From sequence record OR805292.1: a stretch of 64,000 bases of DNA. The stretch is one strand, 5' to 3'. The position numbers and the translations under genes are program-made. The notes below the pieces were generated by a model. The model had not been told where the DNA came from and did not search any database. It saw nothing but the letters and a program-made list of their open reading frames with translations. Each line of letters starts with the position of its first letter. The first letter of the stretch is position 1. Positions 12,327 through 43,288 of the stretch are shown one piece after another.

Positions 12327-12327
12327 T

Positions 12328-12714
12328 ATGTCTAATTTAAATGATTATTTCGGCGGAACATCTAATAGCACTGGAAGTTATCCCAGTGCTATTCCTGCAA
12401 AAAGAATTAATACTTCTGCAACTACTATTACATCTGGCGAAACTAGAGACTTTATTTTAGGAGTATCATCGGGTGCTGTGTTATTCCTCGCTGTCTCTAC
12501 AATAATAGGTAACCAAACAGACACATACGAACTTTATATAAAAATAGGATCTAATATAGTAATAGATTTCGAAACAATAACTGGTAATTTTAATACAAAT
12601 CAACCTGCATTTTTATTAGGTTCGGGTACAGCAACCCTTACAGTACATAATACATCTGCAACAGATATGATGTTTAGTTCAAACACATATTTTGCACCAA
12701 TATCTCTTAGTTAA
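12328..12714 (+). CDS. Small putative fibre-associated protein
   Basis: 128 aa, starts 1 nt after the stop of the giant gene; N-terminus MSNLNDYFGG is shared with the next gene. Confidence 0.75.
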   Translation: MSNLNDYFGGTSNSTGSYPSAIPAKRINTSATTITSGETRDFILGVSSGAVLFLAVSTIIGNQTDTYELYIKIGSNIVIDFETITGNFNTNQPAFLLGSGTATLTVHNTSATDMMFSSNTYFAPISLS

Positions 12715-25790: not shown

Positions 25791-25804
25791 TTTGTAGGAC
25801 AATT

Positions 25805-28216
25805 ATGTACATCGATATTTTCGAAGATAAGAAAAATGAAATACTTCTAGTTGCAGAACGATCTGCAGGCAAACGAATATACAAACAATACCCCATAGAT
25901 CATACGTATTACATATTAGATGCAAACGGACCGTATAAAGATATATTCGGTAATAATGCTAAAGCAATTAAGCCATCTAGCATAAATGAAAAAATGACTC
26001 AAATGAAAATGCTAGATTTTTCGCAAACGTGCGAAATAGACGTCAGGCCAGAATTTAGATGCCTGGAAGTAAACTATAAGAATGCACCTATGCCAGATTT
26101 GCATGTTGCATTCTTCGATATCGAGACCGCGTTTGATCAAAAACGCGGTTATGCTGACCCGGCTGATCCTTTTAATCCCATTATATCAATATCTGTATAT
26201 TTGCAATGGATGCAGCAAATGGTTTGCTTAGCATTAGCACCAGAGACTATATTGCCAGAAGATGCACAACGCATAGCATCAGAAGTAGGCGAAACAATTA
26301 TATGTAAAAATGAAAAAGAAATGCTAAGTATGTTTATTGACTTAGTAGAAGATGCAGACATTTTATCAGGTTGGAACTCAGAACGTTTTGATATTCCTTA
26401 TACTTTTAACAGAATTGTAAAATTATTAGGTAAGAATGAATTAAGAAAATTATGCCTTTGGAATCTTATGCCCAAGAAGCGCAATATTGAACAAGAAGGC
26501 GGCAGTAGTTTTGTTACATTCGAAACGTTCGGTAGAATACATTTAGATTATCTTCAATTGTATAAAAAGTATAATTACGAAGAACGTCATAGTTACTCGT
26601 TAGATTCTATTTCGGAAATCGAACTAGGTGAACGAAAAGTTCCATACAACGGAACATTAGACAAACTTTATAAATATGATTTTAAAAAGTTTTTAGAATA
26701 TAACATTCAAGATACTCGACTCCTAGATAAGTTAGATAGAAAATTAAAATATATAGATCTAGCTTCCACTATTGCACATAGTAATTGCATTCCTATCCCT
26801 ACAGTTATGGGTGCAGTAGCTACAACTGAACAAGCAATTATAATCGAAGCACATAATAACGGCATGGTAGTGCCATCTAGGCAACGTTTTAAAAACAATG
26901 ATACACTTAAAGCTGCGGGCGGTTGGGTAGCATATCCTAAAGTGGGACTGCATAGAGATATTGGCTCCAGTGACTTGAATTCTCTGTATCCTTCTGTGTT
27001 AAGGGCACTAAACATGAGCCCAGAAACTATTATAGGACAAGTTCGGTTAACGCTTACTAACCCTGCAATCGAAGAATGGTGTGCAAAAGGCGGAACAAAA
27101 CATACATTTGCTGCATGGTGGAACGATAGGTTTACCACTTTAGAAATGGAATATGTGTTAAACAAAGACAGGGGTACTATATTAACGTTAGATATGGCAG
27201 ACGGGCGCTCGTTTGAACTGTCAGGTGCCGAAATATACGAATTAGTATTCAACAGTGGTCAGAATTGGCATATCAGTGCTAACGGAACTATATTTACACA
27301 AGACAGGGCAGGTGTAATTCCGTTACTACTTACAAGATGGTATGCAGAACGTAAAGGGATGCAGAAAATTGCATCAGATTATAATTCTTTAGATAAAGAA
27401 CACCATAGCGACAAAACTGTATTTTTAGAAGATAAATCAGTATTAGATGGAATATGCGTAGGCGAAGTTGAATTAGCAGACCATTATAATATTAATGATG
27501 TATATGTTGCAGCTACATTAAAAAGTCTTGTCGAATCAAAAAATTGGCAAGAAGTAGCAATATATATGAAAAAATATGGACTAGAAGTGTCGTCTGACAA
27601 TTCAATTGTTATGTCAGATTCCCATATGCAAACCGAATATTACGAATATTGGGATAAAGCCCAGTTAGTTCGTAAAATTGGATTGAACAGCTTATATGGC
27701 GGACTACTTAACGAACATTCTAGATTCTACGATAAAAGACTAGGACAGAGTACTACACTCACAGGGCGCTGTATCACTAGACATATGGCATCTAAAACAA
27801 ACGAAATGTTCACTGGCATTTACGATCACGAAGGCGATTGTGTAATTTATGGCGATACAGATAGTGTAGATGGATCAACTATCCTAAATACTTCTCTAGG
27901 TAAAATAACTATAGAAGAATTGTTTAATGTGTCTGACAAGCATATAGTTCATGCAGAAAAAGAATTTGCTTCAAATGAAGATGTTATGGTAATGTCATGG
28001 GATAATTCTGCAAAACAACCATATATGGGGCATATAAACTATGTGTACCGGCACGAAGTAGAAAAAGAGTTATTCGAAATAGAAGACAACAACGGAAATA
28101 AAGTTATTGTAACCGAAGATCATTCTATTATGGTTATACGTAATGCAGAACTACTAGAAGTTAAGCCCGCAGAGTTAACAGACAGTGATATAATATTATC
28201 TATTGTATATGAATAA
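25805..28216 (+). CDS. polB: Family-B DNA polymerase, N-terminal part, fused to split-intein N-half
   Basis: Exonuclease motifs FFDIET, WNSERFDIPY and YNIQD; polymerase motifs SDLNSLYPS, KIGLNSLYG and YGDTD, followed directly by intein sequence SVDGSTIL...TEDHS. ATG 25805 preferred over track start 25769. Confidence 0.95.
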   Translation: MYIDIFEDKKNEILLVAERSAGKRIYKQYPIDHTYYILDANGPYKDIFGNNAKAIKPSSINEKMTQMKMLDFSQTCEIDVRPEFRCLEVNYKNAPMPDLHVAFFDIETAFDQKRGYADPADPFNPIISISVYLQWMQQMVCLALAPETILPEDAQRIASEVGETIICKNEKEMLSMFIDLVEDADILSGWNSERFDIPYTFNRIVKLLGKNELRKLCLWNLMPKKRNIEQEGGSSFVTFETFGRIHLDYLQLYKKYNYEERHSYSLDSISEIELGERKVPYNGTLDKLYKYDFKKFLEYNIQDTRLLDKLDRKLKYIDLASTIAHSNCIPIPTVMGAVATTEQAIIIEAHNNGMVVPSRQRFKNNDTLKAAGGWVAYPKVGLHRDIGSSDLNSLYPSVLRALNMSPETIIGQVRLTLTNPAIEEWCAKGGTKHTFAAWWNDRFTTLEMEYVLNKDRGTILTLDMADGRSFELSGAEIYELVFNSGQNWHISANGTIFTQDRAGVIPLLLTRWYAERKGMQKIASDYNSLDKEHHSDKTVFLEDKSVLDGICVGEVELADHYNINDVYVAATLKSLVESKNWQEVAIYMKKYGLEVSSDNSIVMSDSHMQTEYYEYWDKAQLVRKIGLNSLYGGLLNEHSRFYDKRLGQSTTLTGRCITRHMASKTNEMFTGIYDHEGDCVIYGDTDSVDGSTILNTSLGKITIEELFNVSDKHIVHAEKEFASNEDVMVMSWDNSAKQPYMGHINYVYRHEVEKELFEIEDNNGNKVIVTEDHSIMVIRNAELLEVKPAELTDSDIILSIVYE
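27863..28216 (+). mobile_element. Split intein N-fragment (117 aa, Ser1, no Cys)
   Basis: Starts right after YGDTD; block A SVDGSTIL and block B VIVTEDHSIMV, then a stop codon. Confidence 0.9.
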
Positions 28217-29891
28217 AGAATATTATCAGTCATACGCAAAAGAATTAAAAAAGAATAATAAGAAAGAATACAATCGTATTCTTTCTTTGTATGAGCCTGT
28301 ATTTGATAAATGGGTTGCATTCAAGTATTATATAGAAGGAATATCGCCGCCTGTATGTAAAGAGTGTGGTAATAGAATAACTGTTTCGGCAAAACAAGCA
28401 GAATATCACACAGAATGCAAATATAATAAACACAAGTATTCATTTGATAAATTTATAAAATGCATAGATGATGACCAATACATATATTGTGTGTGGAATG
28501 GATATATTTCAACATCTGACAATATAACATACAGATGCACTAAACACGGCATAATTGTTCAAAAACTTAGTTCTAGACTAAAAGGTCACAAATGCCAAAA
28601 ATGTTCAGCTGAGCGTAAAGTAAGTCTAGATAACTTTAATAACTGGAAAACGCAGTGTTCTAAAATACATAATAATTTTTATGATTATTCTGTATCTACT
28701 GATTTTACATTCTTAACAAAAGATGTATCTATTAAATGTCCAATACATGGAATATTTAAACAAAAAGCAAACGTTCATCAATCGGGTCACGGTTGTAAAA
28801 AATGCTCGTTCGAAGCCATCGGTCATAAATTATCATATGACACAGATTCTTTTATAGAAAGAAGTAATAATGTTCATAATAATTTTTATGACTATACCAA
28901 AACTATATACACTAACATTAGAGATAAAGTTATTATAACATGCCCGATACATGGCGACTTTAACCAGATAGCATATTATCATACTGCCGGGCACGGTTGT
29001 CAGAAATGCGATTTAGATAAAGTAGCAGAAACTACATATAGATCTAAGGCAGAAATAGAAATATTCGATTTAGTTAAATCTTATTGCTCAGATACAATTC
29101 ATTCATACAATAAATTTGGGTTCGAATTAGACATATATGTTCCTAGTAAAAATCTTGCAATAGAATATAATGGACTTTATTGGCATTCTTCTAAACACAT
29201 AGAAACTGATCAAAAGTATAAAACATACCATCTTGATAAAACCACTACATGTGAACAAAATAATATCCAATTATTACACATTTTCGACAACGAATGGCAT
29301 ACTAAAAAAGATATATGGATCTCGGTAATAAAAAATAAACTAGGTTTATCTAATAAAATATATGCAAGAAAAACAGAAATTAAAGAAGTTAATTTCGATG
29401 ATGCAAAGCAATTTGCCGAAACGAACCATTTGCAAGGTCATGCACAATTTCGGCATGCATACGGACTGTATTATTCAGATCAATTAGTTTCTTTATTAAC
29501 AATTGCAAAGCCCAGGTTTAATAAAAATGCAAACTGGGAAATAGTAAGATTTTGTAACCTAAATAACACAAGTGTAATAGGTGGGTTTTCTAAATTATTA
29601 AAGGTAGTTTCTTGTAATTTTACAGGCAAGATAGTATCATATGCAAATAGGCGCTGGTCCGTAGGAAACGTTTATGAAAAAAACGGATTTGCTAAAACTT
29701 CAATAATAGCTCCTGGATTTTATTATACTGACTTCAAAGATACATATAATAGGTTATCTTTCTCTAAAGACAAGGCAAAAGTTAAATTAAAAAATTATAA
29801 TAATTCAGTTAGTGTAGTAGAAAATATTTACGCAAACGGATATGGCAGAATTTGGGATTCAGGAAATATTGTTTATACAAAGGATTTATAA
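28209..29891 (+). mobile_element. Free-standing putative homing endonuclease between the polymerase halves
   Basis: Repeated CPIHG...H..GHGC.KC Zn modules; nuclease-like core SKAE...ELDIYVPSKNLAIEYNGLYWHS...LLHIFDNEW; C-terminal YARK...HLQG...RFC...YANRRWS...WDSG module. ATG 28209 overlaps the IntN stop (track start 28203). Confidence 0.8.
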
Positions 29892-30146
29892 ATGCATAAT
29901 CTAACAAAACACCTTTTAGGTGTATTTTCTGCAAAAACAGAAGACGAAGAATATAAAAGTGCAAAAAGAGCGCTAGAAGAATTAAACAAAAATATAAAAG
30001 AAAGAGATCCTAATAAATTTAATGTGTCTTTAGGAAAGGTATCTAAAGTAACTAATTTAGGAAAAAAGAAACAATATGTATACGATATAGGGATGAAAAA
30101 TCCCGATAATCCGTATTTCTTTGGAAATAATATATTAGTTCACAAT
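29892..30146 (+). mobile_element. Split intein C-fragment (85 aa, ends His-Asn, no Cys)
   Basis: CAC AAT at 30141-30146, followed by TCT (Ser+1). Confidence 0.9.
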
Positions 30147-31031
30147 TCTTGCTATTTTACAGCATGGCCTGCAGTAAAAGACCTTGTAGAATCTGGCGAA
30201 ATGGAATGGGATAAAGATACTGTCATTAAATTATACGACAACGTTTCGTCGCAAGTAAGTGATACATTTCCGGAATTTTTAAAACAAACATTTAATGTTC
30301 CATACAAAAACTCAGAAGGTGTTATTAAGTCGGGTAGGGAAATTGTAGCTACTTCTGGTCTTTTTATTAAAAAGAAACGTTATGCTGCTATGATGTATGA
30401 TAAAGAAGGTACTAGATACGACGACGAAAACAGCCCAGGAAAAGTAAAAGCAATGGGTTTAGACTTACGTCGGTCAGATACGCCTAAATTTGTCCAAACA
30501 TTCCTTATGGAAATTCTAGTTATGGTGCTAACACATAAAACAGAAGATGAAGTAATAGAATATATTCGAGAATTTAAAAAAGAATTTAATAAAATGAAAC
30601 CGTGGGAAAAGGGAATGCCAAAAGGCGTCAACGGTATCAGTACATATGAAGATAAATTAGAAGAACACATGAATAAAAAGTTAGCAGGAAGAGAGTCTAG
30701 AATCACTGTCCCCGGTCACGTGTCTGCTGCGATGAATTGGAATAAACTAAAGCTTATCAATAAAGACCTACATACTCCTAAAATCTCAGATGGTCAAAAA
30801 TGTGTTGTTTGTTATTTAAAAGAAACCGCAGACAATCATTTTACTAGTATAGCATATCCTGTAGATGAATTGCACTTACCAGAATGGTTTACGTCTTTGC
30901 CATTTGATGAAGATTTAATGAGAGAAAAAGTAGTAGATAACAAAGTTAAGAACCTTTTAGGTATTCTAAAATGGGATTTTAGTAAAACAGAAGAAGCTGC
31001 TGCACACTTCGATTCGCTGTTTGGTTGGTAA
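29892..31031 (+). CDS. polB: Split-intein C-half fused to family-B DNA polymerase C-terminal part
   Basis: VYDIGM...YFFGNNILVHN|SCYF (blocks F/G, Ser+1), then KKKRYA and VKAMGLDLRRSDTP (PolB thumb); own AAGGA SD. Confidence 0.95.
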   Translation: MHNLTKHLLGVFSAKTEDEEYKSAKRALEELNKNIKERDPNKFNVSLGKVSKVTNLGKKKQYVYDIGMKNPDNPYFFGNNILVHNSCYFTAWPAVKDLVESGEMEWDKDTVIKLYDNVSSQVSDTFPEFLKQTFNVPYKNSEGVIKSGREIVATSGLFIKKKRYAAMMYDKEGTRYDDENSPGKVKAMGLDLRRSDTPKFVQTFLMEILVMVLTHKTEDEVIEYIREFKKEFNKMKPWEKGMPKGVNGISTYEDKLEEHMNKKLAGRESRITVPGHVSAAMNWNKLKLINKDLHTPKISDGQKCVVCYLKETADNHFTSIAYPVDELHLPEWFTSLPFDEDLMREKVVDNKVKNLLGILKWDFSKTEEAAAHFDSLFGW

Positions 31032-31111: not shown

Positions 31112-31858
31112 ATGATTGTAGACAATTTAAAGGACGTAGTTCGTAACACTCACGGTTTGGGTTTTATAGATACTGTTAAAATTATCGGTTCTGTAAATGA
31201 AACTAAATTAGAAGCTATGTCAACTAATAAAACTGTAGTTATGTACGGTTCTTTAAAAAAATCCATTCCGGGGTTAGACGATACTGTAGGTTTAAGTAGA
31301 ATGTCTGTACTGAGCGGTATGTTAAATTTCCCACCATATTCGGGAGATGATGCTGAAGTTTCTATTAAGAAACAAGAACGTAACGGTGAAGAAATTCCTG
31401 CAGAAATTGTATTTTCTTCTTCGACGGGTCATAAATCGTCGTACCGGTTTATGGCACGAGATACAGTAGACGAAGTGCTAAAAGTTCCGCCGTTTAGAGG
31501 AGTTGTGTGGGATATAGTTATTCAACCTACTAAACAAGCGATGAAGGATCTTCAATATTTTAGTGCTGTATTGGGTTCTTATGAATCTAACTTTTTAGTT
31601 AAAGTAACAGACGGTGTTTTAGAATTCCACATAGGTACCGGTGCTACTAGCGACCGCACCGTTGTACCATTTGCAAAAGATGTAAAGAGCACATTACGCA
31701 ATAACTGGTCCTGGCCATTACCAGAAGTGTTAGCAATTCTAAAAAACGCAGATAGTGGCAAATGTACTATGTCTATTTCTAGCCAGGGTGCATTAATGAT
31801 TGAACTCGATACTGGATTAATAGAAGTTCAATATATTCTTCCTGCAAAAAGTGCATAA
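31112..31858 (+). CDS. Putative DNA polymerase sliding clamp (gp45/PCNA-like)
   Basis: 248 aa, directly after the polymerase; alternating beta-alpha pattern ending YILPA. Size and position fit a clamp. Confidence 0.6.
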   Translation: MIVDNLKDVVRNTHGLGFIDTVKIIGSVNETKLEAMSTNKTVVMYGSLKKSIPGLDDTVGLSRMSVLSGMLNFPPYSGDDAEVSIKKQERNGEEIPAEIVFSSSTGHKSSYRFMARDTVDEVLKVPPFRGVVWDIVIQPTKQAMKDLQYFSAVLGSYESNFLVKVTDGVLEFHIGTGATSDRTVVPFAKDVKSTLRNNWSWPLPEVLAILKNADSGKCTMSISSQGALMIELDTGLIEVQYILPAKSA

Positions 31859-31861
31859 ATA

Positions 31862-32122
31862 ATGATCTTACCTGCTCGTAAATTAGTTAAATTGCAATAC
31901 TATATTGTACAGGAATCTTACAATTCTATAGGTAGACCAATAACTACAGTTACTCTTGTATACAGAAAATATATATTTTTTACAAAGAAAGAAAAAATTA
32001 TATTCGAGCGTATTAAGAAAACAGACAATTTGTATTATAAACAAGAATCCGAAAAAGAGTTGTGTGAACAACTAAGTGTATGGGCAAAAAGAACATTAAA
32101 AATATATGATATAGGGCAATAA
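31862..32122 (+). CDS. Hypothetical protein
   Basis: 86-aa co-oriented ORF ending in a terminator. Confidence 0.6.
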   Translation: MILPARKLVKLQYYIVQESYNSIGRPITTVTLVYRKYIFFTKKEKIIFERIKKTDNLYYKQESEKELCEQLSVWAKRTLKIYDIGQ

Positions 32123-32137
32123 TTGCCCTATATTTTT
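32109..32137. terminator. Intrinsic terminator
   Basis: atatagggcaat-a-attgccctatat followed by a T tract. Confidence 0.75.
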
Positions 32138-32194: not shown

Positions 32195-33817
32195 ATGAAA
32201 AATTTATCAAACAGTCAAAAAGATTATGCGATCTATTTGCCTGCAATTAGTGGGTTTTACACAAAACAATTAGACAGTTCTATTAACGATCCGTCTACAA
32301 GAAAAATACCTAGCTTTCCTAACGGATATAATACTCTTAATTTTTTAGATCCATCTAGCGATACATTCTTTTACGGGTATGGGTTATATTCTGCAGGCCA
32401 TGCAGAACTGTCTTTATCTAGAACTGATGCAAAAGAATGGATGATCCAAGCCAGGGACAAAACACAAACAACAGTTATTGCAGATTCGGGTGGTTTCCAG
32501 GTAGCTACCGGTGTAATTAAATTAAACTGGGATGATTTTAAAGGAGCTAGCGGAGATAAAATAAGAAATGAAATTTTAAAATGGTGTGAACATACCGCCG
32601 ACTGGTCAATGACACTAGATGTTCCTGCGTTTGCTGCTACTCCTCCGTACAGTTCAAAAACCGGTCTTAATAAATTTGAAGATACATTAGATTATTCTCT
32701 TCATAATTTACATTATTACATGAAGAACAGAACTCCTGGCGCAACTAAATTCCTTAGTGTATTATCGGGATCAGATGTAGATACATCTAAAATTTGGTAC
32801 GACAACGTAAAAGCATTTAGTGACCCAGCTAAAGTAGTAGAAATGGGATATCCAGCTAGTCATACACTCGAAGGGTATGCATTTGCTGGTATAAACATGA
32901 GAAATATGTATTGTGCTCTTTCTCGATTCTTAGATTTAATAGATGATAATATTATTTCGGATAAAAACTGGATACACTTTCTCGGACTAGGCAGGACTGA
33001 TTGGGCTTGTTTCTTAACATCTATTCAGCGAAATATAAGAAAACATTATAATCCCAATATTAACATAAGTTTTGACGCAGCTTCTCCGTTTGTTTCTGTG
33101 GCATATGGTCTTGCATATAACTATAATTATTTTAATCCCAAACGGTGGGGATATAATATGGATTCTGCCCCAGACAGTAGAGAGTTTAGTGATAAAGATA
33201 TTCCAATGCCGTTTATGAGTCCTATTATGGAAAAATTATCATTAAAAGACATATGTCCATATCACAATGGTTATGGTATAATAAATGGTGTTAAAAATGC
33301 AAACTTTACAAAAGAAGATGTAGAAACTGCTCTCAAAGAAGGAAAAGATGCAGAATACGTGCCGCCGAGTGCAAATAAAAATGGTAAAGTAGGTAAAACC
33401 AGTTGGGATTCACTTAGTTACTTATTAATAATGAATCACAATGTTTACAATCATATAGCTGCAATCCAAGAATCTAATAGATTAGTTGATATAGAACGGT
33501 TGCGAGTTAAAGTAGATTACCGAGATTGGACTAGAGATAAAAAGAAAGGGACTATAGAAGTAAGTAATCACGTCCCTAGTTCGATTTTATATTTTGACCA
33601 TTTCGTAGAAGTATTGCTAGATCCGAGTACTCCTAATAAGCGACAATTACTAGAAGATTATAGACCTATGCTAGACAGCATTAGTTTCGGTAATTATAAC
33701 TCAAACTCATTTAATAGTCTTTTTGATGTAGATGCTACTGCAATTGAAGATGAAAATAAGTTTGCAGACATAAACGACGAAAAACTAACTGAATTAGAAC
33801 AAGGATTAGACAATTAA
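32195..33817 (+). CDS. TGT/DpdA-like guanine transglycosylase
   Basis: TGT-fold motifs ADSGGFQ (catalytic Asp), MTLDVP, WIHFLG and ISFDAASP; the canonical CxCxxC Zn site is not evident. Confidence 0.75.
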   Translation: MKNLSNSQKDYAIYLPAISGFYTKQLDSSINDPSTRKIPSFPNGYNTLNFLDPSSDTFFYGYGLYSAGHAELSLSRTDAKEWMIQARDKTQTTVIADSGGFQVATGVIKLNWDDFKGASGDKIRNEILKWCEHTADWSMTLDVPAFAATPPYSSKTGLNKFEDTLDYSLHNLHYYMKNRTPGATKFLSVLSGSDVDTSKIWYDNVKAFSDPAKVVEMGYPASHTLEGYAFAGINMRNMYCALSRFLDLIDDNIISDKNWIHFLGLGRTDWACFLTSIQRNIRKHYNPNINISFDAASPFVSVAYGLAYNYNYFNPKRWGYNMDSAPDSREFSDKDIPMPFMSPIMEKLSLKDICPYHNGYGIINGVKNANFTKEDVETALKEGKDAEYVPPSANKNGKVGKTSWDSLSYLLIMNHNVYNHIAAIQESNRLVDIERLRVKVDYRDWTRDKKKGTIEVSNHVPSSILYFDHFVEVLLDPSTPNKRQLLEDYRPMLDSISFGNYNSNSFNSLFDVDATAIEDENKFADINDEKLTELEQGLDN

Positions 33818-34878
33818 TGAAAGTTATAATAATCCCAATCGAATCAATAGAAACTCGGTATACGTCAGAATGGAATACGTTTCTTAAACCGCAACTAGAA
33901 AAGTATATAAACGAATCCGGTCTCGATGCAGAAATAGTTCAAATTGATGTAGATTATGTTGACGAAGGCACCTCTGCGGGCGCCTTCCTTAACTTTGCAA
34001 ATACAAACATATTCAAAAGCAATCAATTCATTAAATTAGCAAGTATAATAGAAACTTTAAACGATAACGATGTTGTTCTCTATACAGACGCATGGAATCC
34101 CACAGTAGTTCAACTAAATTACATGCGATCGTTAATGAATAAAAAATTTAAAATAATGGGGTTGTGGCACGCCGGTTCGTATGATCCGCATGATTTTTTA
34201 GGAAGGCACTTTGATAAAAATTGGTCATATGAATTTGAAAGATCATTATATAATATATATGATGTAAATTTCTATGCAACTAATTTTAGTAAAGATCTCA
34301 TGATAGATAACCTTTTTGGTAAAACAGCTAACGTAAACAGACACGATATAGTAGGTTGGCCAATGGAATATTTAGTTGACCAACTTGCACCTTCTGTTAT
34401 CAAGACAGATACTATATTATTTCCTCATCGAATTTCTCCGGAAAAACAACCAAATATATTTAAAAAATTAAGATCATTACTTCCTAACTACGAGTTTGTT
34501 TTTGCACAAGAAACTAAATTATCAAAGGCAGAATATCATACACTTCTTAAACGTTCTAAAATTGTCTTTTCGGCTTCGTTGCAGGAAACATTAGGTATAG
34601 GTTTCTACGAAGGTGCATTAGTCGGTGCAATTCCGTTATTGCCCGACCGATTGTCTTATAAAGAAATGACAGAAAATGTAAAAAACAGAAATTTGTATGT
34701 ATATCCAAATGAATGGACTATTTCGGAAAATCTGGCAGACCTAAAAAATTTAGTTACCCTAATAGATTATACTATGCGTAATTATAATTTTATAGTAGAA
34801 GAAATGAAACTTAATTTACTGCCCGAATTAAACAAATATTATAACGGAACAGAGTTGTATAAAAGAATTTTAAAATAA
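33817..34878 (+). CDS. GT-B (GT4-like) glycosyltransferase
   Basis: LFPHRISPEKQP and KIVFSASLQETLGIGFYEG (E-x7-E motif), PLLPDRLSYKE; overlaps the TGT-like stop codon (TAATG). Confidence 0.82.
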   Translation: MKVIIIPIESIETRYTSEWNTFLKPQLEKYINESGLDAEIVQIDVDYVDEGTSAGAFLNFANTNIFKSNQFIKLASIIETLNDNDVVLYTDAWNPTVVQLNYMRSLMNKKFKIMGLWHAGSYDPHDFLGRHFDKNWSYEFERSLYNIYDVNFYATNFSKDLMIDNLFGKTANVNRHDIVGWPMEYLVDQLAPSVIKTDTILFPHRISPEKQPNIFKKLRSLLPNYEFVFAQETKLSKAEYHTLLKRSKIVFSASLQETLGIGFYEGALVGAIPLLPDRLSYKEMTENVKNRNLYVYPNEWTISENLADLKNLVTLIDYTMRNYNFIVEEMKLNLLPELNKYYNGTELYKRILK

Positions 34879-34903
34879 TTTCCATTTAATATTCTGCATA
34901 CAA

Positions 34904-34932
34904 TTTACATTTTAATACGAAAACATTATAAT
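34904..34932 (+). promoter_or_regulatory. sigma70-type promoter
   Basis: TTTACA-17 nt-TATAAT. Confidence 0.6.
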
Positions 34933-34962
34933 ATTACAAAATTAAAAATAAGGATTATTTTT

Positions 34963-35340
34963 ATGGGAATTAAACGATGGATCGAAGTTCCTTTTCAAAA
35001 AGAAGGAATTCACATGTACCCGGGTGCAGATAGTAACCCTGCACTAGCTACAAATGATTGGAAAGATGTATCTTTTTTAGGATATCCTCATTTTCATTAT
35101 TTTTATTTTACTGTTAAAATTGAAGTTTTTCATAATGAACGAGATATCGAATTTATTCAATTTAGACGGTTCTTAGAAAGACTGTATAGTGAATCTCTGC
35201 TAAAACTAGATGGTAAATCTTGTGAAACAATGGCAGAAGAATTATATGAACAAATTAACATTGTATATCCTAACAGGGACGTTGTGATTACAGTGGCAGA
35301 AGACAATATTAATAAAGCTGTTTTAGAATTTTTCAAATAA
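34963..35340 (+). CDS. QueD/PTPS-like T-fold protein
   Basis: 125 aa; GIH...GYPHFHY metal-ligand-like His motif and SCETMAEELY, ending in a beta strand (ITVAED); located next to queE. Confidence 0.55.
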   Translation: MGIKRWIEVPFQKEGIHMYPGADSNPALATNDWKDVSFLGYPHFHYFYFTVKIEVFHNERDIEFIQFRRFLERLYSESLLKLDGKSCETMAEELYEQINIVYPNRDVVITVAEDNINKAVLEFFK

Positions 35341-35354
35341 GCAAGGATGCTATT

Positions 35355-35615
35355 ATGTATAATAAACAACTGTCGGGACTATATACTACTACAACGATAA
35401 ACTCTATGCCAGCTAGCTACTCCGGATTAACGGATCTAGGCATGTATGATACAGAACTTTCAGTATTGAGGAAAAAGATAGAACAGATAGAAAAAATGTT
35501 GTGCATGTTAGAAGTAGATAAAATACTTTCAGAAAAATATCCTGCATTAAAATCTGCATATGACGAATACGAAGTCATATTATCTGTCATAAACGGTACG
35601 GAGAAAAAAGAATAA
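35355..35615 (+). CDS. Hypothetical protein (coiled-coil)
   Basis: 86 aa, AAGGA SD, abuts the next ATG. Confidence 0.7.
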   Translation: MYNKQLSGLYTTTTINSMPASYSGLTDLGMYDTELSVLRKKIEQIEKMLCMLEVDKILSEKYPALKSAYDEYEVILSVINGTEKKE

Positions 35616-36134
35616 ATGGCAATGCGTGTCATTATTACTGGTTGTAACGGTTATGTTGGTAAAACAGTAAGCAAATACTACTATACATTAGGATATGATG
35701 TCGTGGGATTTGATTTAATTAATTCAAAAAATAGTTACATAACTAATTTTTATCAAACTAGCTATGCATCTAGTATCGCAGAAGATATAATACTCGAGTC
35801 TGATGCAGACACGCTTATTCATTGTGCTGTAGAAAAAAGCAATACATTACAACAACATTTCTACCACAATAGTATTCAATTTATAAACTTATTATCAGTA
35901 TTAAAAAATACTTCTATAAAAGAAATAATAGTATTTAGAAATAAAAGTGCAGAAAATAATGATGCCCTTTTAAAACTCTCTAATAACACTAATAAAGACT
36001 ATTTAGAAGAATTTTCTAAATCGACAGGAATTAGTTCAAAAATATATAATTTGTTAGATAAGAATAATAAACAACACATTATAGAATTAGTACAACCGTA
36101 TTTAGAATTAAGTAAACACTTTTATATATTTTAA
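35616..36134 (+). CDS. Truncated/degenerate NAD-dependent epimerase/dehydratase
   Basis: VIITGCNGYVG Rossmann motif and LIHCA present; only 172 aa and no YxxxK catalytic motif. Confidence 0.65.
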   Translation: MAMRVIITGCNGYVGKTVSKYYYTLGYDVVGFDLINSKNSYITNFYQTSYASSIAEDIILESDADTLIHCAVEKSNTLQQHFYHNSIQFINLLSVLKNTSIKEIIVFRNKSAENNDALLKLSNNTNKDYLEEFSKSTGISSKIYNLLDKNNKQHIIELVQPYLELSKHFYIF

Positions 36135-36145
36135 GGAGATATTAT

Positions 36146-36580
36146 ATGTACGATAAAAATTTTGTATCAATGGATCAAATGCCAGTTATTGTCAGTGACT
36201 TGGTTAGTGATATAGACGAAGCAGGAATTTCTCCTAAAGTTATTATTGCTATTAGCAAAGGTGGACTAATTCCTGCCACTATGATTAGCTATTATTATGA
36301 TTGCCCTATTGTAACATACGATCCGGTAGAAGATTGTTTTAGTACAAATAATGACATAAGTTCTGAATGCATTATCGTAGATGATGTTATCGATACAGGC
36401 AATACTGTAAATTCTGTTATTTCTTTGTTAGAAGACGAATTCTTTTTTACGAAAGAAGACATTAGTAGAATTAGAGTAGCATCAATATTTGCAACAAGAA
36501 ATAATACAATTGTAGATTTTTATCATGACGAAATAAGTTACCACGATTCGGTAAGTTTTGAATTTAAACAATTTATTTAA
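36146..36580 (+). CDS. Purine phosphoribosyltransferase (type I PRTase)
   Basis: IIAISKGGLIPA and PRPP-binding loop IIVDDVIDTGNT. Confidence 0.85.
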   Translation: MYDKNFVSMDQMPVIVSDLVSDIDEAGISPKVIIAISKGGLIPATMISYYYDCPIVTYDPVEDCFSTNNDISSECIIVDDVIDTGNTVNSVISLLEDEFFFTKEDISRIRVASIFATRNNTIVDFYHDEISYHDSVSFEFKQFI

Positions 36581-36593
36581 TATAAAGTTATTC

Positions 36594-36622
36594 TTTACTT
36601 TTAGTATGATTGCGTTTATAAT
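36594..36622 (+). promoter_or_regulatory. sigma70-type promoter
   Basis: TTTACT-17 nt-TATAAT upstream of queE. Confidence 0.55.
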
Positions 36623-36650
36623 GTATATTATAAAATAAAGCGGATTATGT

Positions 36651-37523
36651 ATGAAACACAGATATACTGAAAAGTTTTTCTCAGTCCAGGGAGAAAGCCT
36701 ACATACCGGAAAACTATGCACTTGGCTTAGATTTTTCGGATGTTCGTTGCAATGTAGGGGCTTTGGACAAAAAGAACCTGGAAATCCCGAAACATGGGTA
36801 GAACAACGACCGGATTTAATAGATGTAACAAACATTACAGATTATAAACAATTACCGACTCCTAAGTATGGATGTGATTCAGACTATTCTGTGTTTGCTA
36901 AATTTAAACATCTTGCAACAGAAGTCGATCCTGTTGTAGTTGCAAATGAAATAAAACAATTAATTCCTAGTAAAACTTTTGGTAAAAAAATAGGTCATGT
37001 ATTTACGGGCGGAGAACCGTTAGTAAACCAAGAATCTATAGTAGATATAGTAAATTATTGGATAGATACTAATGATTATCCTGCATGGATAGGAATAGAA
37101 ACAAATACAACTAGACCGTTAGAAAAATGCTTAATCGATTTAGTTAACAGATGCAAATCGATCGGTGTGCAATTTTATTTTTCTATGTCACCTAAACTAC
37201 TTCATGTAGCAGGTGAACAACCCAAACGAGCTATCCATATAAATTTAATGAAGGAATATATAGATATTGCACCGGATAGCTATCTAAAATTTGTAGTAAA
37301 TGAAGATCAGCGATCGTGGGATCAAGCAAAAAGTATAGTAGACACATTAAATGCTGATGGGTATTTACCAGATGTGTGGGTTATGCCAGTCGGAGGCATT
37401 TATTCCCAACAAACAGACCCGGTAATTGGAAGACTTGCAGATAAAGCTATCTTCGAATACGAATGGAATGTTAGTTTGCGTGTTCACGTATTAACCTGGG
37501 GTGACGATCAACTAGGTAGGTAA
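36651..37523 (+). CDS. queE: 7-carboxy-7-deazaguanine synthase (radical SAM)
   Basis: EKFFSVQGES, WLRFFGCSLQC...CDS, VFTGGEPL, IETNTT, SMSPKL, YLKFVV, VMPVGG and LRVH, the QueE pattern. Confidence 0.85.
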   Translation: MKHRYTEKFFSVQGESLHTGKLCTWLRFFGCSLQCRGFGQKEPGNPETWVEQRPDLIDVTNITDYKQLPTPKYGCDSDYSVFAKFKHLATEVDPVVVANEIKQLIPSKTFGKKIGHVFTGGEPLVNQESIVDIVNYWIDTNDYPAWIGIETNTTRPLEKCLIDLVNRCKSIGVQFYFSMSPKLLHVAGEQPKRAIHINLMKEYIDIAPDSYLKFVVNEDQRSWDQAKSIVDTLNADGYLPDVWVMPVGGIYSQQTDPVIGRLADKAIFEYEWNVSLRVHVLTWGDDQLGR

Positions 37524-37527
37524 AATC

Positions 37528-37947
37528 ATGAACCGTATTATCCTTTCTGTAGTGTTTAGTTTAATATCGTTGCATGCAGTATGCGGAGAAAATAAATCCT
37601 ATATAAATCCGTATCTTCATGGAAAATGTGTCGGGATGGTTACTAAACTGTCTGAATACGCAAATACCGAAGTATTAACTTTAAAATTGTATAATATAGG
37701 TCAGGTACTTCATGCATACGGCAAATACACTGCACTAAAATCGAATAATGCAGATACAGCACTGTATGATCAAGGATTAGTTGACGGAAGAGAAACAGTT
37801 TCTAAAAATATAGAAAATAACAATTTTAATGTGTTAGTAAAATATTATGAAGATAATTGTCTAGAAATATTTTACAAATCTGCAGACTGGTTATATCATA
37901 ATAACATACACCAGTTCAATAAATTAACGGATATTTTTAATAAATGA
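37528..37947 (+). CDS. Hypothetical protein with predicted signal peptide
   Basis: MNRIILSVVFSLISLHAVC N-terminus. Confidence 0.7.
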   Translation: MNRIILSVVFSLISLHAVCGENKSYINPYLHGKCVGMVTKLSEYANTEVLTLKLYNIGQVLHAYGKYTALKSNNADTALYDQGLVDGRETVSKNIENNNFNVLVKYYEDNCLEIFYKSADWLYHNNIHQFNKLTDIFNK

Positions 37948-39543: not shown

Positions 39544-40002
39544 ATGAAATTAAAATCATTAACTGAAACTTCGTGGATTGTGTTAGACAACCAGGGTGAT
39601 AAAGTAGGTATACTTACTAGAACCAAAGAAAAGCTCAATCTAATGACTCCTGGCGGATCTATGTTATTCGATACGCAAGATGATGCAAATACATTCTTCG
39701 GTGAAGACATATTCAGTAATATAGTATATGTTAGTAAAACAGAAGAAGTGTTCGAATTAGATGGATGGCCAGTATCTACTGCTAACCCTGTTAAAGCACA
39801 ATCAGTAAATAATCTTCCTTGTTACACTAAAACAGAGGGAGGAAAATCAATACACTGTGCCGGATATTATAGTATTAAATTTCCTGGATCATATATAAAC
39901 AGTTTTTGTCCTAAACTTTCTACATTAGAAAAATATGAGTTTAGTGGGCCTTTCAAAACTGAACTCGAAGCAAGAGCAACAACCAGTATTAATAAAAAAT
40001 AA
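39544..40002 (+). CDS. Conserved phage hypothetical protein
   Basis: 152 aa, coupled to rnh; HCAGYY...SFCPK...YEFSGPFKT. Confidence 0.75.
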   Translation: MKLKSLTETSWIVLDNQGDKVGILTRTKEKLNLMTPGGSMLFDTQDDANTFFGEDIFSNIVYVSKTEEVFELDGWPVSTANPVKAQSVNNLPCYTKTEGGKSIHCAGYYSIKFPGSYINSFCPKLSTLEKYEFSGPFKTELEARATTSINKK

Positions 40003-40013
40003 GGAAAATAAAA

Positions 40014-40304
40014 ATGCTCGATAACTATGAACTATTAGCAAAACAAGAATTAGAATCTATGTATAAAAACGTAGTATATGATTTAGGTGCCGATATTCCC
40101 ACAACATTCTTTAATATTAAGTTATCCGAGCACATAGTTCCTAACTCAGAAGCAAATAGAACATTTATAAACAAATATACTAACTTAGTGCATGGTGAAT
40201 GTATGGAATTAGTTTGGTATAGGGCAGTTTGTACAACAGATTCCAAAACAAATAATCTAGTTGTATTAAAATTAGAACGTTGCAGTTCTTATCAGGAAAT
40301 TTAA
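40014..40304 (+). CDS. Hypothetical protein
   Basis: 96 aa, AAGGA SD. Confidence 0.65.
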   Translation: MLDNYELLAKQELESMYKNVVYDLGADIPTTFFNIKLSEHIVPNSEANRTFINKYTNLVHGECMELVWYRAVCTTDSKTNNLVVLKLERCSSYQEI

Positions 40305-40306
40305 TT

Positions 40307-40852
40307 ATGAACAGAAGAAGTTATGATCCCGATTTGTTTAAACAAATAGAAGAAGACGTAGACTGTTATGTGTTTAAACACGAAATGTTTAAAGATATCT
40401 ATTTGTTTATGGATGGTTGGGGTCAAAGTCACAGAACAAACGGTCCTGCTCTTATAATTCCTAATGTATGCGAAGTTTGGTATAATCATGGAAAGATACA
40501 CAGGGATAACGGACCTGCATTTTTTGAAATTACAAAAGACAATGAAGTTAGATATTGTTGGGTTTTAGATAACAATATAATTTCATGCAAGGAACAATAT
40601 GATAACGTATTAGGCACAGAAGCATATGGTGTTTGGGTAGAAGCAACATTAATAAATCATCCTAATTTTTTGGTATTTAATACTAACTATGTAACTCATG
40701 ATTATGTATCTACTGCAAAGAATAAGTATATGCTCGGAGCTACTGATATGAAAGAAGATAATACTAAATGGGCACAGTTGGGTTCGCAACACGATATATA
40801 TAAAAATTTTAAACCAATTTGGATGTCGGAAGAAGAATGGATCAATAGCTAA
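40307..40852 (+). CDS. Hypothetical protein with HRxxGPA repeats
   Basis: HRTNGPALI and IHRDNGPAF; ATG 40307 preferred over track TTG 40280. Confidence 0.7.
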   Translation: MNRRSYDPDLFKQIEEDVDCYVFKHEMFKDIYLFMDGWGQSHRTNGPALIIPNVCEVWYNHGKIHRDNGPAFFEITKDNEVRYCWVLDNNIISCKEQYDNVLGTEAYGVWVEATLINHPNFLVFNTNYVTHDYVSTAKNKYMLGATDMKEDNTKWAQLGSQHDIYKNFKPIWMSEEEWINS

Positions 40853-40854
40853 TA

Positions 40855-41055
40855 ATGACGTTAGTAGTATTGTACATAATAATCCAATCTATTTTAGTAG
40901 GTATACTGCATCATTTAGCTATAAGAAATCTTGTATTAAAAGAAAATTGGTTATGTGTATTTATACTATCAACTATATTATGGATATTATGGCCTATAGG
41001 TTATCTAATATCGTGTATATACGCAATGTATATTAAATATAAAAACCCTGTATAG
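40855..41055 (+). CDS. Small membrane protein
   Basis: 66 aa, two hydrophobic segments. Confidence 0.6.
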   Translation: MTLVVLYIIIQSILVGILHHLAIRNLVLKENWLCVFILSTILWILWPIGYLISCIYAMYIKYKNPV

Positions 41056-41071
41056 TCTATACAGGGTTTTT
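41041..41071. terminator. Bidirectional terminator (near-perfect palindrome)
   Basis: aaaaaccctgtatag-t-ctatacagggttttt. Confidence 0.8.
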
Positions 41072-41131
41072 ATATACCCAGTAAATTATAAAATCAGATA
41101 AATAATACGATGGCTATTACTGGAGATATAT

Positions 41132-41425
41132 ATGGCACGTCCAAAACCTACTATCCTTGTTGAACATGTAGATCCAAAAACATATAAATCTGAGCAAATA
41201 CTCGAAGCTGAAGCTGTGTTTGCTGTGTTTTATAAAGGCGAGCCTATCAATATACGGTCACAGAGTGCATTGATAGATTATGCTCCTAAATATAAGAAAT
41301 CTACATTTGTTAACCCGGGCCATGCACTTAATTTGGCTGAACGTTTAAATGAAATGTTTAAATGCACTGACTTTACTGTTCATAAATTAATTGCAGGAGA
41401 AAAATACACCGGTGAAGAATACTAA
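41132..41425 (+). CDS. Conserved phage hypothetical protein
   Basis: 97 aa, GGAG SD, agaTAAATA at 41099-41104; MARPKP...PKYKKSTFVNPGHA. Confidence 0.8.
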   Translation: MARPKPTILVEHVDPKTYKSEQILEAEAVFAVFYKGEPINIRSQSALIDYAPKYKKSTFVNPGHALNLAERLNEMFKCTDFTVHKLIAGEKYTGEEY

Positions 41426-41762
41426 GCTTAGAGATTCAATTTTCTCTTATTTAAGAGAAAATAACGAATCTTTAACTGAGTTAACAGATATAGAACTTAA
41501 TCGTTTTATATTTGCACACCCTTCTAGTTTTAGACTGTCGTATGACGGTCTAAAACTATTTTCAAAACTATTCACTTCTTATACCTACCATATAGATTTT
41601 AAAATAACTTTCAGACAAAGATTGCTATTAGGTAGGCATCTAAAATTTCCTTATTATTTTAGTGATAAAAGATTAATATTATTTTCATACGACGATTCTT
41701 TATATTTAAATTTAATAGGCGATATAAAGCTCTGGCTAGAATCGTTCGAACATAGTGTTTGA
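41391..41762 (+). CDS. Hypothetical protein
   Basis: 123 aa; the true start may be GTG 41412. Confidence 0.65.
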   Translation: MQEKNTPVKNTKLRDSIFSYLRENNESLTELTDIELNRFIFAHPSSFRLSYDGLKLFSKLFTSYTYHIDFKITFRQRLLLGRHLKFPYYFSDKRLILFSYDDSLYLNLIGDIKLWLESFEHSV

Positions 41763-41787
41763 CATATTTTAAATACTTTTATAAAAT
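41759..41787 (+). promoter_or_regulatory. sigma70-type promoter
   Basis: TTGACA-17 nt-TAAAAT. Confidence 0.75.
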
Positions 41788-41816
41788 TACAGTATATAAA
41801 GTGCTGTAAAATTATC

Positions 41817-42191
41817 ATGAAAAAATCTAAATCTATCACTAGAGCCGAAAACAAAAAACATCAACAATATATAACTAATATGAAATTAGGTGGCAATCCT
41901 AATAAGTACGGTAAATCTAATACTTATAAAAAGCCTAATATAGAACTAAGTCCTAGTATACCTGCATGGGCTACTACACTATCAGAATACAAAAGCATAG
42001 AAACAAATAAACCTATAAACAACGCTATTCCAGTTAAATATGAAGACGAATTTGCAATAAGAGAAGAAATTGCATTAAAAGAAAAAGAACGTAAAAAACA
42101 ATTTGTTGCAGTAGCTTACAACAAGGGCGGATATGTATATTTAGGTGAAAATCCACCCGATGAAATTGTTAAATCAATTGGCAAAAAGTAA
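41817..42191 (+). CDS. Hypothetical basic protein
   Basis: 124 aa, ends VAYNKGGYVY. Confidence 0.7.
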   Translation: MKKSKSITRAENKKHQQYITNMKLGGNPNKYGKSNTYKKPNIELSPSIPAWATTLSEYKSIETNKPINNAIPVKYEDEFAIREEIALKEKERKKQFVAVAYNKGGYVYLGENPPDEIVKSIGKK

Positions 42192-42201
42192 AGGAACATT
42201 T

Positions 42202-42510
42202 ATGTTCTGCACACTACTAAACTTCTTTAAAAAAGATGTAAAGGTATATGCTGTAGTGGTACTTGCTCCTGGCTTAATTTGTTATCTAAGCAAGTTAAAT
42301 AATTTCGATTTAAAGATGGCAACAAGAATTTCTGGTTCAAAATATAAATTAGACGAAAAATTAATCGAAATAATTACTAAAGAAGATGCTATATTGAAAA
42401 TGATATCGGGAGAAATTACTAAAGATGGTAAAAACTATGTTCGCTTTGTAGAAATACCAGATCGTCTTAGACAAGTATTAAAATACCATTACATCGCAAA
42501 TGTGATTTAA
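42202..42510 (+). CDS. Hypothetical protein
   Basis: ATG 42202 with AAGGA SD (track start 42145). Confidence 0.65.
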   Translation: MFCTLLNFFKKDVKVYAVVVLAPGLICYLSKLNNFDLKMATRISGSKYKLDEKLIEIITKEDAILKMISGEITKDGKNYVRFVEIPDRLRQVLKYHYIANVI

Positions 42511-42534
42511 TAGAAAAAATATCTAAAAAGGAAC

Positions 42535-43086
42535 ATGAATAGTATAAAAATGAAATATTACACTAAATGGTTTTTGATGACACACAGAAATAAAATGTAT
42601 GATTTTAAGAATCTATCATTTTATATATTACTAGTAGGAAATGTAGTTTTTAATCCTATTATAGCGAGTTTCTTAATTATTCTCAAAATAATGCAATTAT
42701 TGCAAAATAAACCAGAATATTTAGATACTATCCCTGTGCTTAATGAAGTATTTTATATGTTTGTTGCTGAGTTAGTTTCTATATCTTATCGGTTTATAAA
42801 TAAAACACCCGATTATGAAATATTTCATTCTTCGTTTAACAAAAGAAAACCAAAACAACATAAAAATAATACATGTAAAAAAAGAAATGATCGCTGTATC
42901 GGGGAAGAAACAATTAGCAATAAAAGATCATCATTTTATAATACAGGTGTTAAACTATATAAAGACAGCAAAGATAAAAGAAAACGATATGCTTATCCTA
43001 GGCAATCCGGTCCGCGTGGCTCCTGCTGGTATCCTACATTTAGACTTCCTAAATATTTTAAGAGAAAAAAGAAAAAAGGGCTATAA
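42535..43086 (+). CDS. Hypothetical protein (hydrophobic N-half, basic C-half)
   Basis: AAGGA SD; stop codon falls in the terminator arm. Confidence 0.55.
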   Translation: MNSIKMKYYTKWFLMTHRNKMYDFKNLSFYILLVGNVVFNPIIASFLIILKIMQLLQNKPEYLDTIPVLNEVFYMFVAELVSISYRFINKTPDYEIFHSSFNKRKPKQHKNNTCKKRNDRCIGEETISNKRSSFYNTGVKLYKDSKDKRKRYAYPRQSGPRGSCWYPTFRLPKYFKRKKKKGL

Positions 43087-43098
43087 TTGCCCTTTTTT
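43072..43098. terminator. Intrinsic terminator
   Basis: aaaaaagggc-tataatt-gccctttttt. Confidence 0.75.
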
Positions 43099-43288
43099 AA
43101 TGATTAAAAAATTACGTTTTACTATGTTGACTAACTATATAGTTATTTGCTTTAATAACATCCTGCTTTGCAAAACAACAAATAATAGCATTCATAAAAA
43201 TTGTTAATTATGTGTTGTTTTAAAAGCTACAAGCTGTAAAATGTAGGTGTTAAACAGCAAAACATATTCAACCACAGAGGCATTATAG

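Follow-up and report, generated by a model that had tools for sequence, protein, structure and literature searches.

A predicted 7-deazaguanine DNA-modification cluster with a DpdA-like transglycosylase and a DpdL-associated glycosyltransferase in the Pseudomonas jumbo phage Cassandra

A stretch of 64,000 nucleotides (hereafter the window) of sequence record OR805292.1, the genome of the 288-kb PA5oct-like Pseudomonas jumbo phage Cassandra, carries between positions 32195 and 37523 seven open reading frames (ORFs), all on the + strand, which very probably make up a system for deazaguanine modification of DNA that includes a new DpdA-like enzyme and a homologue of DpdL. With less assurance, and on balance, the cluster is read here as the core of a 7-deazaguanine (DG) modification of phage DNA in which a DG-type base would be elaborated by a sugar. 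Positions are those of the window unless the record is named (record position = window position + 62,000). Dozens of related viral contigs carry these genes together on a single strand, a recurrence that is not due to chance, and the 5.3-kb region is 98.7-99% identical to its counterparts in ten further PA5oct-like jumbo phage records (Wroclawvirus, about 287 kb).

Phages of the PA5oct type are of interest as candidate therapeutics against Pseudomonas. The DNA of PA5oct is resistant to restriction at G-containing sites, a modified G has been inferred in GA and/or GG motifs, and the phage is restricted by modification-dependent END nucleases, one of which acted only on those of the phages that have modified G (PMC12191111). 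The same paper notes QueE and a 6-pyruvoyl-tetrahydropterin synthase (PTPS) gene in PA5oct, names no transglycosylase and gives no chemistry; nor was a transglycosylase found to have been identified in PA5oct-like phages in the searchable papers. The present analysis names a candidate transglycosylase for this modified G (its clade comprises over 1,600 sequence clusters, many of which come from 200-400-kb contigs), revises the predicted base to DG, and describes a module in which a glycosyltransferase and a 168-residue protein accompany DpdL across unrelated phages. The predicted system differs from known phage deazaguanine systems in its unannotated transglycosylase clade and in the addition of the glycosyltransferase and the 168-residue protein.

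In the proposed mechanism, FolE, QueD and QueE would convert GTP to 7-carboxy-7-deazaguanine (CDG) by an established pathway whose genes are all present in Cassandra, and the DpdL homologue would convert CDG to DG, as has been proposed for phage phiST. After replication, the 540-residue transglycosylase would remove guanine from phage DNA and put the deazaguanine base in its place, as its fold, motifs, genomic context and the published DNA phenotype suggest, and the PA5oct restriction data point to GA and/or GG as the contexts of insertion. The GT4-like glycosyltransferase may transfer a sugar from a nucleotide-sugar to the base, either free or already in DNA. The Gpt-like phosphoribosyltransferase (PRTase) would most likely turn the guanine that is set free into GMP, thereby driving the exchange onward. 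The epimerase that relatives may use to tailor the donor sugar has decayed.

The DpdA-like transglycosylase

The first gene of the cluster (32195-33817, + strand) encodes a 540-residue protein that a preliminary description of the window, made from its letters alone, had called TGT/DpdA-like (TGT, tRNA-guanine transglycosylase) from the motifs DSGGFQ, LDVP and FDAAS. All three are present, at residues 97, 141 and 293 (containing D97, D142 and D294, respectively), and D97, S98, G100, Q102, D142, P144 and D294-P298 (D294 followed by AASP) are invariant across a 36-sequence alignment of the family. The family and PDB searches with the protein sequence came back empty, with no match in Pfam (including the TGT family, PF01702), NCBIfam, PHROG or the PDB (phmmer and profile), so that the fold could be seen only through structure prediction. 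The AlphaFold2 (AF2) model built on the 36-sequence alignment (predicted local distance difference test score (pLDDT) of 87.9) has a TGT fold: its eleven best matches among PDB structures are all tRNA-guanine transglycosylases, those of Z. mobilis (TGT) and mammals (QTRT1/2), with E values of 4e-5 to 1e-3 and a probability of 1.0. Its matches in BFVD include the homologue in Vibrio phage 2.275.O, proteins of about 420 residues, a 'tRNA guanine transglycosylase' of Achromobacter phage Motura, a protein of Vibrio phage nt-1, and M4SLA5 (DpdA3) of phiST.

The likeness to bacterial TGTs (Z. mobilis 1p0d, E. coli Tgt) lies in the TIM-barrel fold and in the Asp motifs DSGGFQ, xDxx and FDxx, which occur in the same order; those of E. 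coli Tgt are TDSGGFQV (D89), FDEC (D143) and MFDCV (D264), the comparison being one of motif order and not of residue equivalence in three dimensions. The Cassandra protein differs from these enzymes in having about 170 extra residues, no Pfam TGT match and, as a search for it showed, no zinc motif CxCxxC...H (it contains 4 Cys in all), and also in its likely substrate, DNA. By its fold and motifs it belongs to the TGT superfamily, as had been claimed, and the signature of the active site is intact. Its placement among the DpdA subfamilies, a check that the preliminary description had suggested, succeeded only in part: by hhalign the core from DSGGFQ to FDAAS aligned with that of ACP17 DpdA (probability 81.5%), where the counterpart reads DSGGLQ...YDS, and the alignments with phiST DpdA3 (32%) and E. 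coli Tgt (18%) were too weak for clade placement. At E <= 0.001 there are more than 1,600 relatives (sequence clusters), with a typical identity of 50% and a length of about 520 residues, and many of these are encoded on 200-390-kb contigs. On these comparisons the protein belongs to a separate DpdA-like clade, large and unannotated, with no demonstrable membership of DpdA1-4.

That the enzyme might act on tRNA, either of the host or phage-encoded, instead of DNA is suggested by a fold that is that of tRNA-guanine transglycosylases and by the tRNAs, including tRNA-Asn, that the phage encodes, but we find this scarcely credible. PA5oct virion DNA resists restriction at G-containing sites and is recognized by END nucleases that depend on modification, the gene is always found beside DNA polymerase and clamp genes, the closer structural relatives are phage DpdAs, and the zinc motif is missing. 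DNA is the favoured target, on the basis of the restriction and END-nuclease data for PA5oct (PMC12191111).

The linkage of this gene to deazaguanine synthesis is evident from its neighbourhoods in other viruses. A scan of IMG/VR yielded 569 relatives of the TGT-like gene; 80 loci were analysed, of which 48 were complete (with at least 9 kb of downstream and at least 5 kb of upstream sequence). A clamp-like gene lies upstream of the TGT-like gene in all 48 complete loci, genes for the glycosyltransferase and for DpdL are each present in 47, QueE in 39, FolE in 35, a full-length epimerase in 31 and the PRTase in 24, whereas QueC and QueF are found in none (0/48). The co-occurring genes are all on one strand, and in most of these loci QueE, DpdL and FolE lie within about 10 kb of the TGT-like gene. 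The only cultured phages found to encode a member of the family are the PA5oct-like phages, Sinorhizobium phage Phosso and Vibrio phage 2.275.O. In the last of these the TGT-like gene lies within about 8 kb upstream of genes for QueF, a YhhQ transporter, QueC, an Ntn amidotransferase (Gat), FolE and a QueE homologue. A 370-residue neighbour of this Vibrio phage transglycosylase was tested as a possible counterpart of the Cassandra glycosyltransferase and was ruled out.

Synthesis of the base and the DpdL homologue

The last gene of the cluster (36651-37523, + strand) encodes a QueE-like protein of 290 residues, a putative radical S-adenosylmethionine (SAM) CDG synthase, and its identification as QueE in the preliminary description agrees with its match to phrog_2076 (6.6e-49). 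The elements QGE (13-15) and TGGE (119-122) and the residues C31, C35 and C75 are conserved in 48 sequences; the Cys spacing is CX3CX39C, the canonical CX3CX2C not being present, and NCBIfam QueE models match the N-terminus without reaching their full-length cut-offs. As had been stated, there are no genes for FolE, QueC, QueF or Gat in the window, where tblastn with seeds for these proteins and for YhhQ found none. The search of the rest of the genome that had been recommended for folE and queC recovered the former and not the latter. FolE (Pfam, 1e-59) and a canonical QueD (PTPS, 2e-30, with CxxxHGH as C-RHL-HGH) are encoded at record 39743-40934, a part of the genome that precedes the window and lies 54 kb upstream of the cluster, and QueC, QueF, Gat and YhhQ are absent from the whole Cassandra genome by a reading of the annotation and by tblastn with seeds. 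Cassandra_0232, a PP-loop ATPase of 178 residues encoded near the tRNA gene cluster (record 148629-149165), was considered as a hidden QueC and rejected as a TilS-type protein (ATP_bind_3, 3.6e-29) with no QueC family match. Near FolE and QueD there is also a second PTPS paralogue with CxxxHGY in place of CxxxHGH, and a ClpX-like ATPase gene belongs to the same group (record 39743-43181). Because FolE, QueD and QueE are all encoded in the genome, the phage is predicted to be able to make CDG on its own, without precursors from the host.

The third gene (34963-35340, + strand, 125 residues, with a match to phrog_17812) had been described as encoding a QueD-like protein with a His motif. The His motif was found, but the protein, by its sequence relationships, is a homologue of DpdL and not QueD. 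By tblastn it is 33% identical to CGPG_00067 of phiST (4e-8) and 47% identical to ASD50405 of ACP17 (5e-25), and the hidden Markov model (HMM) of its family matches these two DpdL proteins at 3e-43 and 3.5e-60, respectively. CGPG_00067 was named DpdL by Cui et al. (PMC10516641), who described it as a QueD paralogue in which the QueD motif CxxxHGH is replaced by LxxxHRHxF, proposed that it decarboxylates CDG to 7-deazaguanine, and observed that phages bearing DpdL have FolE, QueD, QueE and a DpdA without QueC. The Cassandra genome follows the same gene logic, with FolE, QueD, QueE and a DpdA-like protein present and QueC absent. The corresponding motif of the 125-residue protein is L39-GYP-H43-F-H45-Y-F47, with Phe in place of Arg in this phage only, and H17, H43, H45, H57, E63, E88 and E113 are invariant in the DpdL family. 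The link of DpdL to the T-fold comes from HHpred results in PMC10516641; in our searches with the 125-residue protein there was no match to Pfam PTPS or to a PDB profile, and alignment by hhalign with the two PTPS proteins of the phage itself gave no significant score.

With a DpdL homologue in place of the supposed QueD, the pathway probably runs one step past CDG, to 7-deazaguanine. The preliminary description had reasoned that without QueC it might stop at CDG or draw on preQ0 of the host. The absence of QueC holds for the whole genome, but since DpdL is present and QueC and QueF are not, the predicted phage product is probably DG, not CDG or preQ0, and FolE and QueD of the phage make host precursors unnecessary.

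The closest precedent is phiST, which encodes FolE, QueD, QueE, DpdL and DpdA3 and has 100% 2'-deoxy-7-deazaguanosine (dDG), every G being replaced (PMC10516641). Cassandra resembles phiST in its CDG pathway without QueC, its DpdL homologue (33% identity), its distant TGT-fold transglycosylase and the presumed function of protection from restriction. It differs in that DpdA3 has 259 residues as opposed to 540 and is only marginally related (hhalign 32%), and in that the deazaguanine cluster of phiST contains no glycosyltransferase, PRTase or epimerase. All G is replaced in phiST, whereas PA5oct is apparently modified in certain motifs only.

The gene at 36146-36580 (+ strand, 144 residues) encodes a type I purine PRTase resembling Gpt, the xanthine-guanine phosphoribosyltransferase (XGPRT), as had been recognized at the outset. 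It matches Pfam Pribosyltran (2.6e-11; 43.6 bits against a cut-off of 26.3), its best NCBIfam match is a xanthine PRTase, its best PDB matches are purine PRTases and XGPRT, and the loop DDxxDTGxT that would bind phosphoribosyl pyrophosphate (PRPP) is conserved (D79, D80, D83, G85, T87). Such an enzyme could serve a route at the level of nucleotides, in which it would join CDG or DG to PRPP in the manner of TubE, and the resulting 7-deaza-GMP analogue would be reduced, phosphorylated and incorporated by the polymerase, leaving the TGT-like protein a secondary or different role. TubE joins CDG and PRPP in tubercidin synthesis, a pathway that has a decarboxylase and no QueC (PMC6112128). The PRTase of Cassandra is of the purine type with an intact PRPP loop, the cluster is situated between genes of DNA polymerase and clamp on one side and of an RNase H/5'-3' exonuclease on the other, and the genome encodes a ribonucleotide reductase and a dNMP kinase. 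Nevertheless, we consider this route quite improbable: a PRTase was detected in 24 of the 48 complete loci, as against all of them for the TGT-like gene, whose catalytic Asp residues are invariant, the clusters of ACP17 and X1 are without a PRTase, and modification restricted to GA/GG motifs in PA5oct fits a sequence-selective enzyme acting after replication.

The glycosyltransferase, its association with DpdL and the question of a sugar

The second gene (33817-34878, + strand, 353 residues) had been taken to encode a GT-B glycosyltransferase. This is upheld by its AF2 model (pLDDT 92.5), which matches retaining GT-B enzymes of the GT4 type, and the gene is tied to the deazaguanine pathway by co-occurrence. 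At E <= 0.001 Foldseek matched the model to 104 PDB structures, the foremost being BshA, PglA and MshA (E values down to 3e-10, TM score about 0.6), with glycogen synthases, GlgM, SenB, TarM and LmbT among the other top matches, and the glucosyltransferases of phage T4 were sought among the top 50 and were not there. By PDB profile search there was only a weak match to WlaC (0.0022). Across 67 homologues R205, E209, K210 and E265 do not vary, and only E or D occurs at position 257; by analogy with GT4 enzymes we take R205, E209, K210 and the residues at 257 and 265 to belong to the donor site (Arg/Lys for the diphosphate, and E-x7-E), and their conservation fits an active nucleotide-sugar site. 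Many of the structural relatives use small-molecule acceptors (malate, inositol phosphate, ergothioneine), as do the closest of them. Glycosylation of the free base before its insertion would be as likely as glycosylation of DNA. The family is large, with at least 8,000 metagenomic relatives, many of the best matches being from marine samples.

The preliminary description had also placed weight on translational coupling of this gene to the transglycosylase gene through TAATG. The overlap exists (33815-33819, the TAA of the transglycosylase gene and the ATG of the glycosyltransferase gene having one base in common), with a ribosome-binding-like AAGGA 11 nucleotides upstream, but it is peculiar to the PA5oct-like phages, and the conserved feature is co-occurrence with DpdL. 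In ACP17 a homologue of the glycosyltransferase (38% identity) is encoded between DpdA and DpdL; in Xanthomonas phage X1/BUDD the gene order is glycosyltransferase-DpdA-DpdL-QueE, with identities of 24% for the glycosyltransferase and 42% for DpdL; and in Phosso the glycosyltransferase gene (42% identity) is directly 3' of that of DpdL and 170 kb from the TGT-like gene. The DpdAs of ACP17 and X1 share 38% identity and fall in a clade other than that of the 540-residue protein. Neither DpdL nor the glycosyltransferase was found in Vibrio phage 2.275.O, which has a preQ1-type route, or in locus L065, and phiST has DpdL with no glycosyltransferase in its deazaguanine gene cluster. Together with the 47 of 48 complete loci in which the two genes occur together, these distributions indicate that the glycosyltransferase tracks DpdL and not any particular transglycosylase, and in terms of gene content it appears to be an optional addition to the DG branch.

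ACP17 and X1 resemble Cassandra in having the homologous glycosyltransferase and DpdL (47% identity in ACP17) adjoining DpdA and QueE. They differ in the shorter DpdA clade (424-437 residues, labelled queuine tRNA-ribosyltransferase in X1) and in having no PRTase in the cluster, and no DNA chemistry is reported for either phage in the searchable papers. A further likeness of ACP17 concerns a protein of 168 residues, encoded in Cassandra at 61821-62327 (+ strand), which matched nothing in any of the family libraries searched. In 59 loci its homologues neighbour the TGT-like gene, and in ACP17 a homologue is encoded directly 5' of DpdA (HMM, 7.5e-27), whereas in PA5oct-like phages the gene is displaced by about 28 kb and adjoins a gene resembling zinc-dependent alcohol dehydrogenases (60916-61818 in Cassandra). 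From this pattern of neighbourhoods it is probably a fifth component of the module. When dpdA and dpdL of ACP17 were placed alone in E. coli no dDG was formed, which led the authors to suggest a possible need for additional enzymes (PMC10516641); the extra proteins of the module may explain that failure.

The gene at 35616-36134 (+ strand, 172 residues) had been identified as a truncated sugar epimerase, and the truncation is real: the match to Pfam Epimerase (3e-7) covers the N-terminal Rossmann half only, with GxxGxxG kept and about 140 C-terminal residues gone. R/N/K, F and T stand where the alignment places the catalytic Ser, Tyr and Lys, whereas relatives of 255-324 residues have an NPYxxTK motif. 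As an NAD-dependent epimerase/dehydratase of the extended short-chain dehydrogenase/reductase (SDR) type the protein lacks both the catalytic residues and the C-terminal part, and its sequence is that of a gene decayed in Cassandra.

Whether the base of Cassandra carries a sugar is, in our estimation, close to evenly balanced; the case for it is built on co-occurrence, on the intact donor-site residues and on the epimerases of relatives. The opposing view is that the DNA contains plain 7-deazaguanine (or CDG) and that the glycosyltransferase is a non-catalytic or scaffold partner of DpdA and DpdL, or acts on an unrelated small molecule or protein. It can appeal to phiST, which reaches 100% dDG without a glycosyltransferase, to the small-molecule acceptors of the closest structural relatives, to the lack of an evident acceptor group in DG, to the decay of the phage's own epimerase, and to the ACP17 experiment, in which dpdA and dpdL alone yielded no dDG. 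We regard it as rather unlikely, for the invariance of R205, K210 and E265 in 67 homologues argues for catalysis, the glycosyltransferase is kept beside DpdL in four lineages with two DpdA clades, and full-length nucleotide-sugar epimerases are found alongside in 31 of 48 relatives.

Several further points weigh against a sugar-bearing DG in Cassandra DNA. No O- or N-acceptor is evident at C7 of DG, which makes the position of a sugar questionable; since C7 bears neither a hydroxyl nor an amino side chain, the sugar might be linked in an unusual way, through N2 or C7. The score of the glycosyltransferase for Pfam Glycos_transf_1 is below threshold (18.0 bits against a cut-off of 26.4), the protein is acidic (isoelectric point 5.65), which is not suggestive of DNA binding, and several DpdL phages have no detectable glycosyltransferase. 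The 47 of 48 loci represent mostly one lineage with conserved gene order and shared ancestry and are not independent, so that independent support for the link between glycosyltransferase and DpdL amounts to about four lineages. The decarboxylase activity of DpdL is itself a proposal, and heterologous tests of it failed (PMC10516641). In the searchable literature no published chemistry was found for the modified G of PA5oct.

Precedents for the chemistry exist outside phage DNA. Mannosyl- and galactosyl-queuosine of eukaryotic tRNA carry a sugar on a base of the 7-deazaguanine type. HuiG, which is of the GT4 type, uses UDP-GlcNAc to N-glycosylate a free 7-deazapurine base (bioRxiv 10.64898/2026.04.15.718813), and in huimycin synthesis, as also in that of dapiramicin, a GT4-type enzyme attaches a sugar to a base of this type. 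The products in these cases are secondary metabolites or tRNA nucleosides and not DNA, and HuiG is likened to the Cassandra enzyme by function, not by sequence. The alpha- and beta-glucosyltransferases of T4 are, like the enzyme proposed here, phage GT-B enzymes that decorate a modified DNA base against host nucleases; their acceptor is the pyrimidine hydroxymethyl group of hydroxymethylcytosine. The preliminary description had stated that no glycosylated deazaguanine was known from phage DNA, and none was found, in phage or other DNA, in the searchable literature.

We tentatively extend the proposal to a broader group: PA5oct-like phages, ACP17, X1 and very abundant uncultured large phages, many of them marine, may bear a sugar on 7-deazaguanine in their DNA by way of DpdL, a GT4-like enzyme and insertion of the DpdA type, a generalization that we hold less firmly than the reading of the Cassandra cluster. 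If true, the sugar would represent a new class of purine DNA hypermodification and the first glycosylated purine analogue in any genome, with consequences for restriction evasion, sensing by modification-dependent nucleases, sequencing artefacts in viromes, and enzyme tools.

Distant relatives of the glycosyltransferase also occur in another setting. In the Xanthomonas phage PhiXhv-12 (record positions 122430-124144) such relatives (24% identity) are encoded beside GlmS and a BshB/LmbE-like deacetylase, with no DpdL, and the same type of GlmS/deacetylase arrangement was seen in PhiXhv-15/16, Ep026 and Ep032. This locus, designated L103, looks like a different phage sugar module, possibly based on glucosamine.

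Genomic setting and neighbouring genes

A strong terminator-like hairpin (32108-32134, + strand), with a 12-bp stem followed by a T run, parts the cluster from the genes upstream. In a scan of the + strand no terminator-like site was found between the cluster genes, the sole other match (32389-32407) being inside the transglycosylase gene; since there is no terminator between them, it is plausible that the genes form a single transcription unit. The remaining ORF of the cluster (35355-35615, + strand) encodes a small conserved protein of 86 residues, whose family was detected in 15 loci; in locus L007 a homologue is encoded immediately 5' of the epimerase gene. Before the hairpin lies the gene of a sliding-clamp-like protein (31112-31858, + strand, 248 residues), labelled PCNA in phage PAC2, which speaks to the context of the cluster and not to its chemistry.

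The marine locus L017 has two 2-oxoglutarate/Fe(II)-dependent (2OG-Fe(II)) oxygenase genes (7989-8597 and 11855-12496) and a HIT-family gene interleaved with those of the transglycosylase, glycosyltransferase, DpdL and PRTase, and their presence could point to further chemical variants of the base. Such oxygenases were considered as the source of a hydroxyl acceptor and set aside as specific to that lineage, with no counterpart in the Cassandra cluster.

Directly 3' of the QueE gene is an ORF of 139 residues (37528-37947) with a hydrophobic, signal-peptide-like N-terminus, for which neither a family match nor a homologue in the related loci was detected. On the other side of the cluster, the family B DNA polymerase gene (about 25800-31031) is present as two ORFs, split by the gene of a 562-residue Hef-like homing endonuclease (28203-29891).

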